From contig NC_087253.1 in the NCBI RefSeq assembly GCF_037042905.1, positions 2,108,001 to 2,172,000 on the forward strand: DNA of 64,000 nucleotides, in the 5' to 3' direction. The position numbers and the translations under genes are program-made. Origin of the DNA: Lytechinus pictus (lineage: Eukaryota). The notes under the pieces were generated by a model. That model was not told the origin of the DNA. It made no database searches and saw nothing but the letters and a program-made list of their open reading frames with translations. Shown one piece after another: positions 2,009-28,563 of the stretch. How positions within the stretch are numbered: the first letter of the stretch is position 1; the number at the start of each line of letters is the position of its first letter.

Positions 2009-2955
2009 CCGCAGAATCATATTTATTACATTATATTTATATTAATTCAGTGAACAGCGATATGTCACTGCAATGAATGTAAGCGGGAGCATCACTCCTC
2101 CATCAGATCGACGGGGGATGGTTGGGTGTTGCTAAATGTTCATTCGTGAGCTTGAATAAAGTGGATTACTGGCAAGGAAGAAGACAAGCAGCGGATCATA
2201 TTTAAATCAAATCTTGAAATCGATTAGAACATTATATCATTCGAAAGAAAGGTTTTGTGCTATTTATATATTATTTCGCGGAATTCTAGAGTCAGTTATT
2301 ACCTGCGAAAATAGGATTTTCATAATAGGATTTGAAATGTATTCATTATAAAAGATAACATTTAAGCGCACAATAGAGTTTCCTGGAATAAAAAAAGCAG
2401 TCGTTAGAAAGGAATATACATACATACAAACCACTCAACAGTAAACCCCCCGATAAAATGAAATAATAAATGTTATCAACATTGTTAAACAAATTCATAA
2501 ATGATAATTGATTGAACACGTAGCATAAAAATACCAAAATACATAAATATATAAACGAAACGAAATGAGTAAATTCATTTTTTTTATCAATTATGTACGG
2601 ATGGAGTAGGCCTACTGTTTTTGCTCATTCGGCTGTTTTGGATGTACTTTTATGTAAAGTTATTAGGCTATAGTTAAAAAAAAAAAATGTTCTCACTAGC
2701 TCGTATCATGATGTATCCAGCTTGTTTAACTATTTCTCCGTTGGAGATAAGGAATAAGCGGATATTTGATTTATGGATTTATATTGAAATATATTGTTTA
2801 AAAACGACTTTTTCTTTTCATTTATATTTCACACTTATTAGTTCATTTCATATTTTATCAAAGTAATTACGCTACATGTTTCATTTTATTGTATCCCCTT
2901 CTGCAGATATAACCTATTTTCGTACACCCCACTGTACACCACCAATCCACAAATC

Positions 2956-4017
2956 ATGTCATCATCTACGCTATCATCGCAGACGTCATCGACGTCGTCG
3001 TCATCGAGACCGCGGTCATCATGGCTCCAGGTCATATGCTTGACGGTCATCGTGTACATTTTTATTTTCTCTACTGCATGCTGCCAAGCCGTGCCCATCT
3101 GGAAGTCCACCTCACCTCACCAGCTGAGATCAATGAGTGCTAACAAGATCGACGACGATATCGCGACGGCCGCCGGCGGCGGAATCCCGAGTTTGCCGGC
3201 TGGTGACGGCGAGTTCGACAGCCCCGAGTCGATACTGGAGAGATGCATACAGGCTTCAGCGGATGGGGATATTGAGGAGAATGTTTTTGTAAAAACTCTG
3301 TGTACGCTGGCACTAATTCATACCCGACATACTAATGACCAAACAAATCATCAAGGATATGTTAAAAGAGGTGGGTACCATAAACTATTACCATGGTTAC
3401 TGTGTGTTTGGTGAAAGGGCGGGGAAATTGGGATAGGGTAATTCGGCTCCGGTATTTTCTGGTGTTAAAAAGATGTACCTTTGAATACGTGATTTTCAAC
3501 AGACTTGTGTCTTGGCGACATGTGAATTTTCAAACACTGATAATATTAATGTCACGAATATAACTTGTATACATACTTATTAAAGCAGCTAAATAGTTAT
3601 AATCTTCAACTAAAAGAGATCGATAAAAATAGCAATGGCTAAAATTATCATTGCCATTTTTTGCAGCAGGTCCATGACCATCAAAACAAAACAATGTAAC
3701 TTGTACATGTATTAGATTGACCATTGACATCGAACGTAAGGGTGAGAAGTCTGCGTTTTTTGGTTTTCTCTCTCATCATTTATTAATATATTTCCATCCT
3801 TCTTGTCTTCTTTTATTATTCAACAGGTGCCTCATCGGATAGATCTGCCTTTGGCGCGTTTGGTCGGTTTGTGACCCGGTTACGGTTACATGCCGACGAG
3901 GTAGCCGACTACCAAGAAAAACTGAACCGACTACAAGCACTGGGCATACTCGATCCGGATTACAACCTCATATCCGTGCCATCCGAAACAGCGAGTCTGA
4001 TGAAACAACAGGGATAA
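2956..4017 (+). CDS. Putative secreted neuropeptide/peptide-hormone precursor, 201 aa, 2 coding exons (2956-3370, 3827-4017)
   Basis: Acceptor ctgcag at 2901-2906 precedes the ATG. Hydrophobic segment WLQVICLTVIVYIFIFSTACCQA|VP resembles a signal peptide. Exon ends ...GTT AAA AGA G|gtgggt (phase 1) right after Lys-Arg. Pyrimidine-rich acceptor caacag ends at 3826. The spliced frame stays open: GASSDRSAFGAFGRFVTRLRLHADEVADYQEKLNRLQALGILDPDYNLISVPSETASLMKQQG-stop (TAA 4015-4017). Both exons are GC-richer than their flanks. Confidence 0.75.
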
Positions 4018-7000
4018 ATTATCACCTATTGACTAATTGTCCAAAATTTTCTTGTCCCAGTCGTTTTCCAGAGAGAACGCTTTAGCCAGTTTTTCGGTTT
4101 GAATTAAGCTCGACTCACGTTTAAACCGGCCAACTGGAGAACCGCAAATTCGAATGAATTCAACGTAAAATAAAGACTCATCTCCTTGAATTTCAAAGCC
4201 AGTTTCTTTCTTTGATTTGAACAAAGAAAATGCTGTTGCTCAGTTTTTTTTTCCGATGTCAGCCTGTTGATGCATTTTCAAGTCGGACTGATGACAGAGA
4301 AAAGACACCATATCTCAGACTTAGGCAACATTGCTCATAATTTGGGAGAATTAATAACGAAATCGTCAATTATTCAATCGCTTGATCAACTACTTTATTT
4401 TACGAGTATCTCTTCGTATTCAATATGGTGAATGAGTAAACCGATGGGTCTTATGAGAGAGAAGCCTGAACTTTCCCTAGAACTATTGGATTTTATCATG
4501 TTTCATTGTGTAGGCCTAAATATTATGATTCGAAGGACTTCGCTTTTTTTCTTAGCTGGTAAATTAATGTACCCTAAATGGACACATTCCCAATCGCTTG
4601 AGGGTTTTTTTTTGCCAAGAGATCGACTGTCCATTAAACTATTCCAAAAATATTAGGCACTAATCTGCACACCAGATGGCGCTCTTACTAATAATTCAAT
4701 TTGACGATAAATTATTGTCAACGGTCGGAGCGCTTGAATGGACTCTGTGTTCATCAAAACCATTTTCATGAACTGGCTATTTATAGCTCTGGATTGCTTC
4801 TATTTATTTTATGATGTCCAATAGATAATCTCAATTTGCTTTATACTATCATATTTTCTCTTTTCTTATAGATATTTCTTTGTTTTGGCGATAGTGCAAT
4901 ATTACGTATTTATGAAGGTTTTGTATAGTAAAAGTATTCTTTGCGTCTGAAAATATATTTTTTTTGTTAAAGCTATGCGAATACTTGAATTATTTGGTTG
5001 AAAATGTCCGGGTCTAATTGATTTTGATATTAAAAATGACTAGTCTTAACGACCATGAGTAAACCATTCCAAGCTAATATGAGTGGTTGATCATTGTAAT
5101 AATTTTCAGTTACATTACTAATCATGTTCCTGTATCACAGTAATCTATTGAATAAAAATAAACGGTTAAGATTTACCCATATGCTTAAGTTGGATGTCTT
5201 GTATCAAGCAAGCAAATCAAAATGGTCACGGACATTACTATGTACTACTCAATGGCCCCTCCTTGTCCGAATTTGGCATATAATCTTCAGCCAACAATCA
5301 TTAAAAATGGATAGCGTCTTATAAAAAGTCGCACAAACGAGACAAATTATATCCCGTTTTAATTCCATGTAAAGTCGAATGCGTGTGATAAGCATGGTGT
5401 AATTCAATATGTGATGACGTAATGTGTGATGACGTAGGCGATCACATGATAACGAACAGAAGTTATTTTATGTATTAACAAACAAAAGCAAAACAAACGT
5501 CCAAGAAAGTACTACTATATGCACCGTTCTCTGCCGATGATGCACGCTTGTAGCAGTTCTATTTATTTCTCTATAAAATAAATAAAGTACTACGGTTTCA
5601 TTTCTAAAACGTCAACTTGTTATGGAACGTACTTATTGAGCTTTAAAACGATTATAGGCAAAAAAGCTGCAATTAGCACGGATGTATGACAGTATGTCTA
5701 AATAATAATAAATAAATGTCTAAATATTGTGATCAAGCAATTCTTGATGTTTTTGACAGAGTATTTACAAGGAAAACAAACAACTCGTTGGCATGTTTAA
5801 AAAAAATGCAAAAATTCCGTTTTCTATATTACAAACTTCGAGACACTTTGCAAATAATATCGCACTCATTTAGTAAGCCTCCTGTTTTTTTATGTCTCAT
5901 ATCAGAATTCAAACTTATTTGATAGAAGATAAAAACTAATATCAGGGAAGTTATATTCCTCTTTTGAAAAAAAAGTGTAGACTCACTTGTGTTTGCATGT
6001 TAGAATAAACGAAGATATTAATGCGATTACGTTTTTTTTTATCTGAATATACTTTCTATCACACTAAACTGACGATACAATTTTCGAGCAGTTTCTTTGA
6101 CAGAATGATAACGATGACCACTCAATGTGGTTAAAACTCTACTACTTAACAAATTAACTTATATTCTCCTTTAAGTCTCTGTTAAGTATTACGTGGTAAT
6201 GAAATACATTACGTAATAGCTGACAAACTATGCTAACCATATTGAATGGCAATGACCCGGTTATGATATAGTTATGTTAGTATCACTGTAATTGCAATGT
6301 ACATACAAATTATTTTTTATGTGTTTGCTGACTGTTCATAAAGTATAAGAAACATCAGAAGATTTACATTTGAGTCCCAGAAAATGTGTATGGAGTGTGG
6401 TTTCCCTTCTCACTATAGAATTGTAAATAACATAGATGATTATCAACGGAGGGAAAACGACAAGTATTTAACGATCGTAGATGGCGCTGCCAAGCTCTGG
6501 TATTCAACTGTTTCTCAACCAAAATAATGTTATGATGGTTCGTCAAAACGATTTTATATTCACCTTTTAAATGTTGAACAATTAAGGTGCACAAACGTAT
6601 CACCAAAGGGTTATTTATTTCCATGTTATCATCAAGTTATGTAAGTTATGTGATTAAAACTTACACCTACCGTAAAACAACCCAAACCAGTCAATCGTTT
6701 AGTCAGAAAACAATCGGATTGAACATTGCTTTCCTAAAGCTTAATAAAAAAAAAACACGCGGTGCTTTACCAGTTTAGAATCCGTTTAAAATCCATATTT
6801 TTAAAGCCATCGTCACGCCATTGTCGATCGTATCTTTATGTGAGAATTTTGTTTGATGAAGAAAGTCTGAAATAAATTGCATGATCTGAGTAAAATTAAA
6901 GACATATAATTTCTGGATTTTTTGTGTGTGCATGTGTCATGTGCTTGGGTTTGATGCACTTTTGTGTAATGAGTGAATGTCTAGTGTTGAGTTGATCGAT

Positions 7001-26919: not shown

Positions 26920-28563
26920 TTACACTAAAGTCTCTGCAATATTGTACACCATTTGTTCTGAATCGTCTTGACTGTGAAGTGAGCTCAGTCCGGTGTCTGA
27001 GCTAGAGTCCGTGTCACATGACCTCGACGGCGATTTCCTATTGGTCATATCAATCGGTGAGAAGTCATGGTCAATACCCTGATCGAGGCTCGATTCCATT
27101 GAGCTGTTCTTACTGCGCATGTTCACCGGGCTTGAATGATTCTGTTCCACGCATACGCGGATTTCGTCATCTTCAGTCGACCTTTCATGGACATCCTTCT
27201 CCAGTTGTGCTAATTCATTGGTCAGTTTGTTCAATCGATCACATTTATCGTTATAAACTTTCTCAGTCTCGTGGAGCTCACCTTGCAAAGTGTCAATCTC
27301 ACTGCATTTCGCTACGGATGCTTGTGCGGACCGTTCTAACTGCGTTCTTGCAACGCCTATATCCTTCGCCGCTCGGTTTTGCGTTAACTTTGTACTACAA
27401 GCACCTCGTTTCTTTTCATACCGTCTCGGTCTCGTGCTAGGTTTTATTTCACTCATATCAGTAGGGTCAGCCTGCTGCTCAGAGGTTTCCTGAAATATTT
27501 CCTGGGCCAAATCGGAAACGACATCCTGAGTTTGTCTTAATTGTTCATCTGCGTGAAAGAGTCTGTCGCAGAGTGCCGTGTACTCCTCCAGATCACGAAT
27601 GGCTACTTCGTGAGGAGCTGAAGGAACCCGCGTGTTTGGATCAGGACTCTGATCTCCCAAGCTCAAATGTCCAAAGGATTTGGCAAAGTGACCCGCACTA
27701 TTGCCTTCAGCCGCCTCACCATCATTACCTGAACCTGATAGATAAGCTTCTTGAACATAATTCCTGCCATCAGCATGCATTCTAAAATTGTGCAGCCTTG
27801 TTTCATACATATCAATATCGGTGTCTACAGATGATATTGTTTCTAGGAGATTGTGCAACTGGTGACTCTGCTTTAAGATCCTCTGGATGAGGGCCTCAGA
27901 GTCTTGTTCGTTTAACAGGAGTTTCGCCTTCCCTTCGACTTCCTCTGCGAGTGTTGTTGGACCCTCTGCTGTGACTTTCCCGCTTGAACTGGATGTCGAA
28001 GCGCTAGAATCACAATCTAACGGCGGCGGGCACAGAATGCGGACGTCAGAGAAACCAACGTCACTCTCATCCGCCCAACTTCGTCTTCGCTTTTCCTTTT
28101 TCTTACTTTCGCGATTAACCCGACCTTCACCACTGCTAGTCTTTTTCTTCAGGTCAAAGGCTACAATCCCTTCTTTAAGGTTGTACTGTCCCTGGCTCTT
28201 CATCTGTTTGGTCTTTTCTCTGAGCTTAATCCCACCACTTTCACCGTCAACTTCACTGTCTAAGCTGTTACGACGTTTAGAAATAGCAACGCTCTTCCTC
28301 AGCGTGAACTTAACGTTGTCACGCTCAGCTCCCCACGCCTTCCATAGCTTATACATCCGCGTCCGTGGGCTCAGCTGACGCTCGCATCCCCGCCACTTCT
28401 CGAAGAGGGCGTAACACTCAAGATTCGCAGGAGACAGTTCGCACTTTGAAAGTTTGTAACGGTCTTGAAGGAGAATTGCGATGACATCCTCGCATCTGGT
28501 GTGACGGTTGAGGCCTCCGACGATCTTCTCCTTGCCACCCACCCAGACCGGCAACTCGTTCAT
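26920..28563 (-). CDS. RASSF10: N-terminal Ras-association domain protein, RASSF9/RASSF10-like, 547 aa, single coding exon
   Basis: N-terminal RA domain (ELPVWVGGKEKIVGGLNRHTRCEDVIAILL...YALFEKWRGCERQLSPRTRMYKLWKAWG), coiled-coil segments, C-terminal DSSSDTGLSSLHS motif and terminal ETLV. Minus-strand acceptor at 28629-28630 precedes the ATG. RASSF9 and RASSF10 orthology cannot be separated by eye. Confidence 0.9.
   Translation of the reverse strand: MNELPVWVGGKEKIVGGLNRHTRCEDVIAILLQDRYKLSKCELSPANLECYALFEKWRGCERQLSPRTRMYKLWKAWGAERDNVKFTLRKSVAISKRRNSLDSEVDGESGGIKLREKTKQMKSQGQYNLKEGIVAFDLKKKTSSGEGRVNRESKKKEKRRRSWADESDVGFSDVRILCPPPLDCDSSASTSSSSGKVTAEGPTTLAEEVEGKAKLLLNEQDSEALIQRILKQSHQLHNLLETISSVDTDIDMYETRLHNFRMHADGRNYVQEAYLSGSGNDGEAAEGNSAGHFAKSFGHLSLGDQSPDPNTRVPSAPHEVAIRDLEEYTALCDRLFHADEQLRQTQDVVSDLAQEIFQETSEQQADPTDMSEIKPSTRPRRYEKKRGACSTKLTQNRAAKDIGVARTQLERSAQASVAKCSEIDTLQGELHETEKVYNDKCDRLNKLTNELAQLEKDVHERSTEDDEIRVCVEQNHSSPVNMRSKNSSMESSLDQGIDHDFSPIDMTNRKSPSRSCDTDSSSDTGLSSLHSQDDSEQMVYNIAETLV

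Follow-up and report, generated by a model that had tools for sequence, protein, structure and literature searches.

We propose that a spliced gene of the sea urchin Lytechinus pictus, carried by NCBI as 'uncharacterized protein LOC129268447', encodes a member of a new orphan family of prohormone-like proteins seen so far mainly in echinoids, a reading to which we assign roughly even chances. The features of the predicted protein make it plausible that LOC129268447 is an orphan member of the peptide-hormone precursor class that falls within no named peptide family. If so, residues 23-45 would probably carry the nascent chain into the endoplasmic reticulum with the C-terminus in the lumen, and cleavage would probably follow Ala45. 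A prohormone convertase would cut after Lys137-Arg138 (after KRR in a short paralogue described below), a carboxypeptidase would trim the basic pair, and Gly201 would be used by peptidylglycine alpha-amidating monooxygenase. The predicted product is a mostly helical peptide of ~62 residues, Gly139-Gln200-amide, which would be released as an intercellular signal. The gene lies within the 64-kb stretch of L. pictus DNA analyzed here (64,000 nucleotides in full, hereafter the window), and its features are collected in Table 1.

The list of open reading frames for the window contains a 152-aa product (2956..3414) that runs through a GT donor at 3371. A preliminary description of this DNA had interpreted this product as an intron read-through, and the ORF list, the exon translations and the RNA data all agree with that interpretation. 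Joining 2956-3369 to 3829-4017 through a Gly codon divided between the exons (g at 3370, gt at 3827-3828) yields a protein of 201 aa, and the exon translations reproduce the two halves of the spliced protein that had been quoted previously. The 3370/3827 junction, which skips 456 bases bounded by GT..AG, is represented in two RNA contigs (X1 and X2) and in nine stranded raw reads with six start positions. Across positions 2700-4400, two RNA contig sets and two stranded raw RNA-seq runs provide zero coverage inside the 456-nt intron, and the RNA reads in this interval are all oriented as predicted for a transcript of the + strand. The intron acceptor ending at 3826 is preceded by a strong polypyrimidine tract. 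Translation of the spliced exon 1 (2956-3369) gives a 99% match to an NCBI L. pictus protein (P0001, 201 aa), the LOC129268447 product, and a 73% match to the Strongylocentrotus purpuratus orthologue, 'uncharacterized protein LOC100893023' (200 aa). The existence of the NCBI model qualifies the earlier statement that the precursor is hidden by splicing, which applies to a plain ORF track but not to annotation pipelines.

The start of the coding region can also be assigned. No stop codon occurs in frame between 2908 and the ATG at 2956, and, as we read it, the loose-end sequence of the RNA contigs has an in-frame TAA at the end of the upstream exon, which fixes the ATG at 2956 as the start. The ~550 nt of 5′ sequence that X1 and X2 carry upstream of 2907 have no match within the 64-kb window. 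The exon or exons bearing the remainder of the 5′ UTR must therefore reside outside the window, along with the promoter, and the first intron must exceed 2.9 kb. At the other end, X1 (3128 nt in total) is still colinear with the genomic sequence at 4400 and continues for 1532 nt beyond this point, implying a 3′ UTR of ~1.9 kb. Expression of LOC129268447 is modest in whole-sample RNA. When the variant table is read against the reading frame, the coding variants present in the reads comprise four synonymous changes and one Thr/Ser replacement located in the pro-region; both variants in the exon encoding the peptide are synonymous. Elsewhere in the window, a 547-aa ORF on the opposite strand (26920-28563, -) carries a Ras-association domain of the RASSF8/10 type (Pfam PF21712, E 1.2e-08), and probably corresponds to one large exon of a gene resembling RASSF.

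Table 1. Features of the LOC129268447 gene and its predicted precursor, in window coordinates
Feature	Position	Strand	Description and basis
5′ UTR part of first coding exon	2907..2955	+	Acceptor ...ctgcag/ata at 2906/2907; X1 and X2 matches start at 2907
Coding exon 1	2956..3370	+	Residues 1-138 and first base of Gly139; translation, RNA coverage, P0001
Hydrophobic signal-like segment	3022..3090	+	Residues 23-45 (W..CCQA); Kyte-Doolittle; kept in S. purpuratus and Diadema
Two-Cys pro-region (C97, C116)	3211..3363	+	Two predicted helices; sequence conservation
Lys137-Arg138	3364..3369	+	Only dibasic site of the protein
Intron	3371..3826	+	456 nt, GT..AG, phase 1, splits the Gly139 codon
Coding exon 2	3827..4014	+	Residues 139-201, conserved C-terminal peptide; terminal Gly codon 4012-4014
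Stop codon TAA	4015..4017	+	Directly after the terminal Gly; protein ends ...KQQG
3′ UTR	4018..5932	+	Matched to 4400; end near 5932 inferred from the size of X1

Homologues of this precursor were sought by an exhaustive phmmer search over 1.84 billion representatives, which returned seven hits. One of these, a repetitive protein of 928 aa (P0008, E 3.6e-5), was judged to be spurious, and a profile search of a collection of 5.8 billion proteins added no further members. The long forms of the family comprise, besides the L. pictus protein, that of S. purpuratus, two 191-aa proteins named 'uncharacterized' from Diadema antillarum and D. setosum, and one ENA gene call that is likewise an intron read-through. 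The position and phase of the intron, which follows the KR codons plus one base, are the same in Lytechinus, Strongylocentrotus and Diadema. Phmmer and profile searches detected no homologues in the annotated proteomes of starfish, sea cucumbers, crinoids or hemichordates.

Two shorter proteins share the C-terminal peptide with the long forms. In S. purpuratus, a short paralogue (XP_011673172 / LOC105442603; P0004) is 120 aa in length and consists of a Ser-rich hydrophobic N-terminus, of the kind present in the long form, with AKRRAK immediately behind it and then a 64-residue peptide ending in Gly. A short-type peptide exon is also found as a single genomic exon (L002:783-971), and the exon encoding the short-form peptide seems to start in phase 0, whereas the long form has its intron in phase 1. 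An arrangement in which a paralogous peptide exon lies nearby, as in alternative splicing of the calcitonin/CGRP style, was considered and set aside, as tblastn with the short forms found none in the 64-kb window. The same type of search found no short-form copy within 10 kb of the long-form gene of S. purpuratus, indicating that the short form occupies a separate locus or lies farther away. The second short protein, P0007, is the most divergent family member. It is a 106-aa precursor encoded by a 1.2-kb, mRNA-like Logan contig of SRR6173504 (L001:152-472), and contains a classical 24-residue signal peptide, an acidic spacer and the family peptide, with no dibasic site. The source of P0007 would decide whether the family extends beyond the echinoids sampled. 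As neither the short paralogue nor P0007 carries the Cys region of the long forms, the peptide that they retain is the autonomous conserved unit.

A single dibasic pair, Lys137-Arg138, had been noted previously, and this description of the 201-aa protein stands. L. pictus, S. purpuratus, both Diadema species and P0005 share the pair, which every long form keeps, and the loss of the KR among orthologues that would have counted against the preliminary description is not seen. Among the seven aligned family members, KR or KRR is located exactly at the peptide boundary in six, with P0007 having only DDDR at this location. The preliminary description also had the C-terminal peptide end in Gly, as translation of exon 2 confirms. 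In all seven members the last codon before the stop encodes this Gly, while the three residues that precede it vary, and it may serve as a putative amide donor. Within the ~60-residue peptide as a whole, eleven positions are invariant among the seven members (L, A, Y, L, G, D, Y, I, P, M and the terminal G).

Comparison of the L. pictus and S. purpuratus genes yields dN/dS values of 0.12 for the whole protein, 0.06 for the Cys region, 0.12 for the KR plus peptide and 0.14 for the spacer, and the gene is under purifying selection. For the same four segments, the amino acid identities to Diadema are 47-50%, 43-44%, 55-60% and 28-30%, respectively. It had been anticipated that conservation would be concentrated after the KR. 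The peptide persists across the Diadema/camarodont divergence, and at the distance of Diadema it is indeed the best-conserved segment, but the Cys pro-region is also well conserved (80% identity between L. pictus and S. purpuratus). Between these two species the pro-region is about as constrained as the peptide, which would be unusual for a mere spacer. The two-Cys pro-region might give rise to a second product, or might instead aid sorting or folding.

This constraint, and the character of the N-terminus, bear on an alternative explanation that we judge possible but on balance unlikely, namely that LOC129268447 is a small single-pass membrane protein of type II, or else is secreted without processing, with the conserved helical residues ~86-201 forming one luminal or extracellular unit. 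Such a protein might be, for example, a binding partner or a chaperone-like factor of the secretory pathway, with the KR and the terminal Gly kept for structural reasons. The signal-like N-terminal segment reported in the preliminary description was recovered, with Kyte-Doolittle windows above 1.6 covering residues 23-43. Small residues occupy the -3 and -1 positions (C-Q-A before V-P), in agreement with the -3/-1 rule for signal peptide cleavage. The echinoid hydrophobic stretch, at 21-23 residues, is also compatible with a type II anchor that stays uncleaved; it lies behind a long, Ser-rich n-region of 22 residues that contains R18 and R20, and this n-region is itself conserved to Diadema. 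The positively charged residues that precede the hydrophobic segment would place the C-terminus in the lumen irrespective of cleavage of that segment, so that a cut at the dibasic site would free the peptide from a cleaved and from an uncleaved form alike.

Other evidence is likewise divided between a processed and an unprocessed protein. The strong constraint on both the Cys region and the peptide is consistent with a single functional unit, as is the lack of a dibasic site in P0007. However, P0007 possesses a textbook short signal peptide, and both P0007 and the short paralogue keep the peptide despite having no Cys region. The near-universal placement of KR or KRR at the exact peptide boundary, and the persistence of the Gly-stop arrangement amid varying neighbors, also argue against an unprocessed protein. 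Structure prediction points in the same direction. An AF2 model based on an eight-sequence alignment is non-compact and of low confidence (mean pLDDT 53, pTM 0.25), and in it the Cys region and the peptide do not pack together. The helices in this low-confidence model span residues 22-44, 90-103 and 110-131, together with a long helix at 144-176 (pLDDT 70-75) and a short one at 191-200 that comes after a conserved LD.DYN.I.VP loop. The anchor-length hydrophobic stretch, the P0007 sequence and the constrained pro-region nevertheless constitute weak points of the proposal that LOC129268447 is a prohormone.

Further arguments against a prohormone come from the peptide itself, which lacks Cys and at ~62 residues is long by the standards of neuropeptides, and its helix is no more amphipathic than shuffled sequences. 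The preliminary description had noted that long amphipathic helical peptides are typical ligands of secretin-class receptors, a character that our analysis does not sustain for this helix. For five of six family peptides, 15-37% of shuffles attain the observed hydrophobic moment of ~0.5, and for P0006 4% do so. With regard to length, amidated hormones of comparable size are known, including adrenomedullin (52 aa), crustacean hyperglycaemic hormone (72 aa) and neurosecretory protein GL (80 aa), all of which have disulfides. Given such precedents for secreted, amidated peptides of 50-80 residues, a hormone need not be ruled out on size alone. Unlike these three examples, the LOC129268447 peptide has no Cys, and hmmscan against Pfam detected no sequence similarity.

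If the peptide is indeed secreted and processed, its role might not be neuronal. Immune or antimicrobial, gamete or fertilization, and matrix or biomineralization functions could be envisaged, an alternative that we find improbable. The family appears to be lineage-restricted, as are many echinoid effector peptides, and its modest expression in whole-sample RNA would also be compatible with such functions. However, the peptides carry a net charge of -3 to +2 and thus are not cationic, and they lack both Cys and repeats. Moreover, a dN/dS of ~0.1 and conservation to Diadema are atypical of immune or reproductive effectors. The neighbors of the protein in a language-model atlas are hormone precursors, which also speaks against a non-neuronal role. 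For the whole protein, these neighbors are the vertebrate and arthropod neuropeptide precursors of NMU, NMS, DH31, NPFF, 26RFa and urotensin-2B, and for the peptide alone they fall in the Hormone_2 (35 of 100 hits), Hormone_3, NMU, CRF and calcitonin clusters, although with scores of 0.82-0.87, all below 0.9, and fewer than 120 shared features, these matches represent leads rather than evidence of kinship according to the calibration of the atlas.

The presence of Hormone_2 and CRF clusters among these weak neighbors, together with the long helical peptide and its predicted amidation signal, might suggest that LOC129268447 is a known bilaterian type of ligand for family B receptors that has diverged strongly in echinoids (CRH/DH44, PTH or secretin/PACAP). 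The preliminary description had pointed to faint resemblances of this kind, but these found no support in profile searches, and we regard such a relationship as very improbable. Using hmmscan with two full proteins and six isolated family peptides, no Pfam family was matched at E<=10, and this result includes CRF (PF00473), secretin/glucagon (Hormone_2, PF00123), Parathyroid (PF01279), Calc_CGRP_IAPP (PF00214) and PDF (PF06324). A profile search of PDB sequences likewise produced only noise and matched no solved structure. Matches to Imm75, Spc25 and a LigA-domain/RiPP precursor that arose in the Pfam and PDB searches (E>=0.016) were dismissed as noise.

Comparison with the CRH/urocortin/DH44/ELH group (PF00473) illustrates both the likeness and its limits. 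Precursors in this group also contain a single-copy helical peptide at the C-terminus that follows a dibasic site, and amidation is predicted here as well. However, CRH-type peptides are ~41 residues in length, or ~20 residues shorter than the peptide in question, and end in G-K/R-R rather than in Gly followed directly by a stop codon. Echinoderm precursors of the CRH type have already been described in starfish and brittle stars, and the echinoderm CRH-type peptides listed in an ophiuroid supplement look different when compared by eye, being bounded by KR...GRR. A possible link to SALMFamides was also considered. Residues 145-153 (3844-3870), with the consensus S-[AS]-F-[GS]-A-F-[GN]-R-F, superficially resemble the F-type motif ..SAFNF-G, but neither an amidation Gly nor a cleavage site is conserved at this location, and the resemblance is therefore taken as a coincidence. 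A match to 'FSAFN' in the ophiuroid supplement corresponds to a SALMFamide and is unrelated.

The closest analogy in terms of the class of evidence and the architecture is provided by the echinoderm orphan 'Np' precursors (for example, Spnp/Arnp/Ovnp 18 and Arnp21-25; Semmens et al., 2016, PMC4772807; Zandawala et al., 2017, PMC5627052). The members of this series and LOC129268447 have in common a signal segment, an acidic or otherwise variable spacer, a dibasic site, a conserved C-terminal polypeptide and a lack of similarity to peptides of other phyla, and a terminal Gly is sometimes present in the Np series (PMC4772807, PMC5627052). In contrast to this series, the LOC129268447 peptide has ~62 residues without Cys, and the long form adds a pro-region with two Cys. 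No sequence relation was found between the Np precursors and LOC129268447.

The suggestion in the preliminary description that the peptide is possibly undescribed is consistent with the literature and supplements searched, in which no published description was found. Full-text searches of the literature for the LOC identifiers, for sequence motifs and for SRA identifiers returned no relevant description, although the precursor could have been listed earlier by Rowe and Elphick (2012) or Monroe et al. (2018). It is absent from the supplements of an ophiuroid study, of two single-cell papers and of the S. purpuratus larval neuropeptide study of Wood et al. (2018; PMC6209648), which does not contain the peptide sequence motifs. 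A set of 28 qPCR and probe primers from Wood et al., which cover only the as yet unclassified genes Np8, 9, 10, 11, 13, 17, 18 and 20 together with PDF, SS1, SS2, MCH, Kp and Nesf, show no match with three or fewer mismatches to the 21-kb S. purpuratus locus (L003). Spnp9 was rejected as a member of the same family, being a different precursor that yields a 13-residue peptide.

A more ambitious proposal, which we regard as doubtful and advance with considerable reserve, is that these genes constitute a new hormone system that is echinoid, or possibly echinozoan, in distribution. In it, two paralogous precursors, a long one with a two-Cys pro-domain and a short one, would each give rise to a Cys-free helical peptide of ~60 residues, amidated at its C-terminus, and the receptor would be an orphan GPCR that might belong to the secretin class. 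If this proposal is correct, ligand and receptor would form a pair specific to the lineage, in a sea urchin that is amenable to genetics.

Echinoderm neuropeptides have mostly been catalogued through their likeness to known peptides or by means of short amidated motifs. A family of long, Cys-free amidated peptides could easily have escaped notice. Should LOC129268447 prove instead to be an unprocessed membrane or secreted protein, it would be a correctly annotated but uncharacterized echinoid gene. If it is a prohormone, an orphan ligand and its paralogue would join the signaling repertoire of deuterostomes, and since L. pictus can be bred and is amenable to gene editing, knockout, expression mapping and receptor pairing would be practical in this species.
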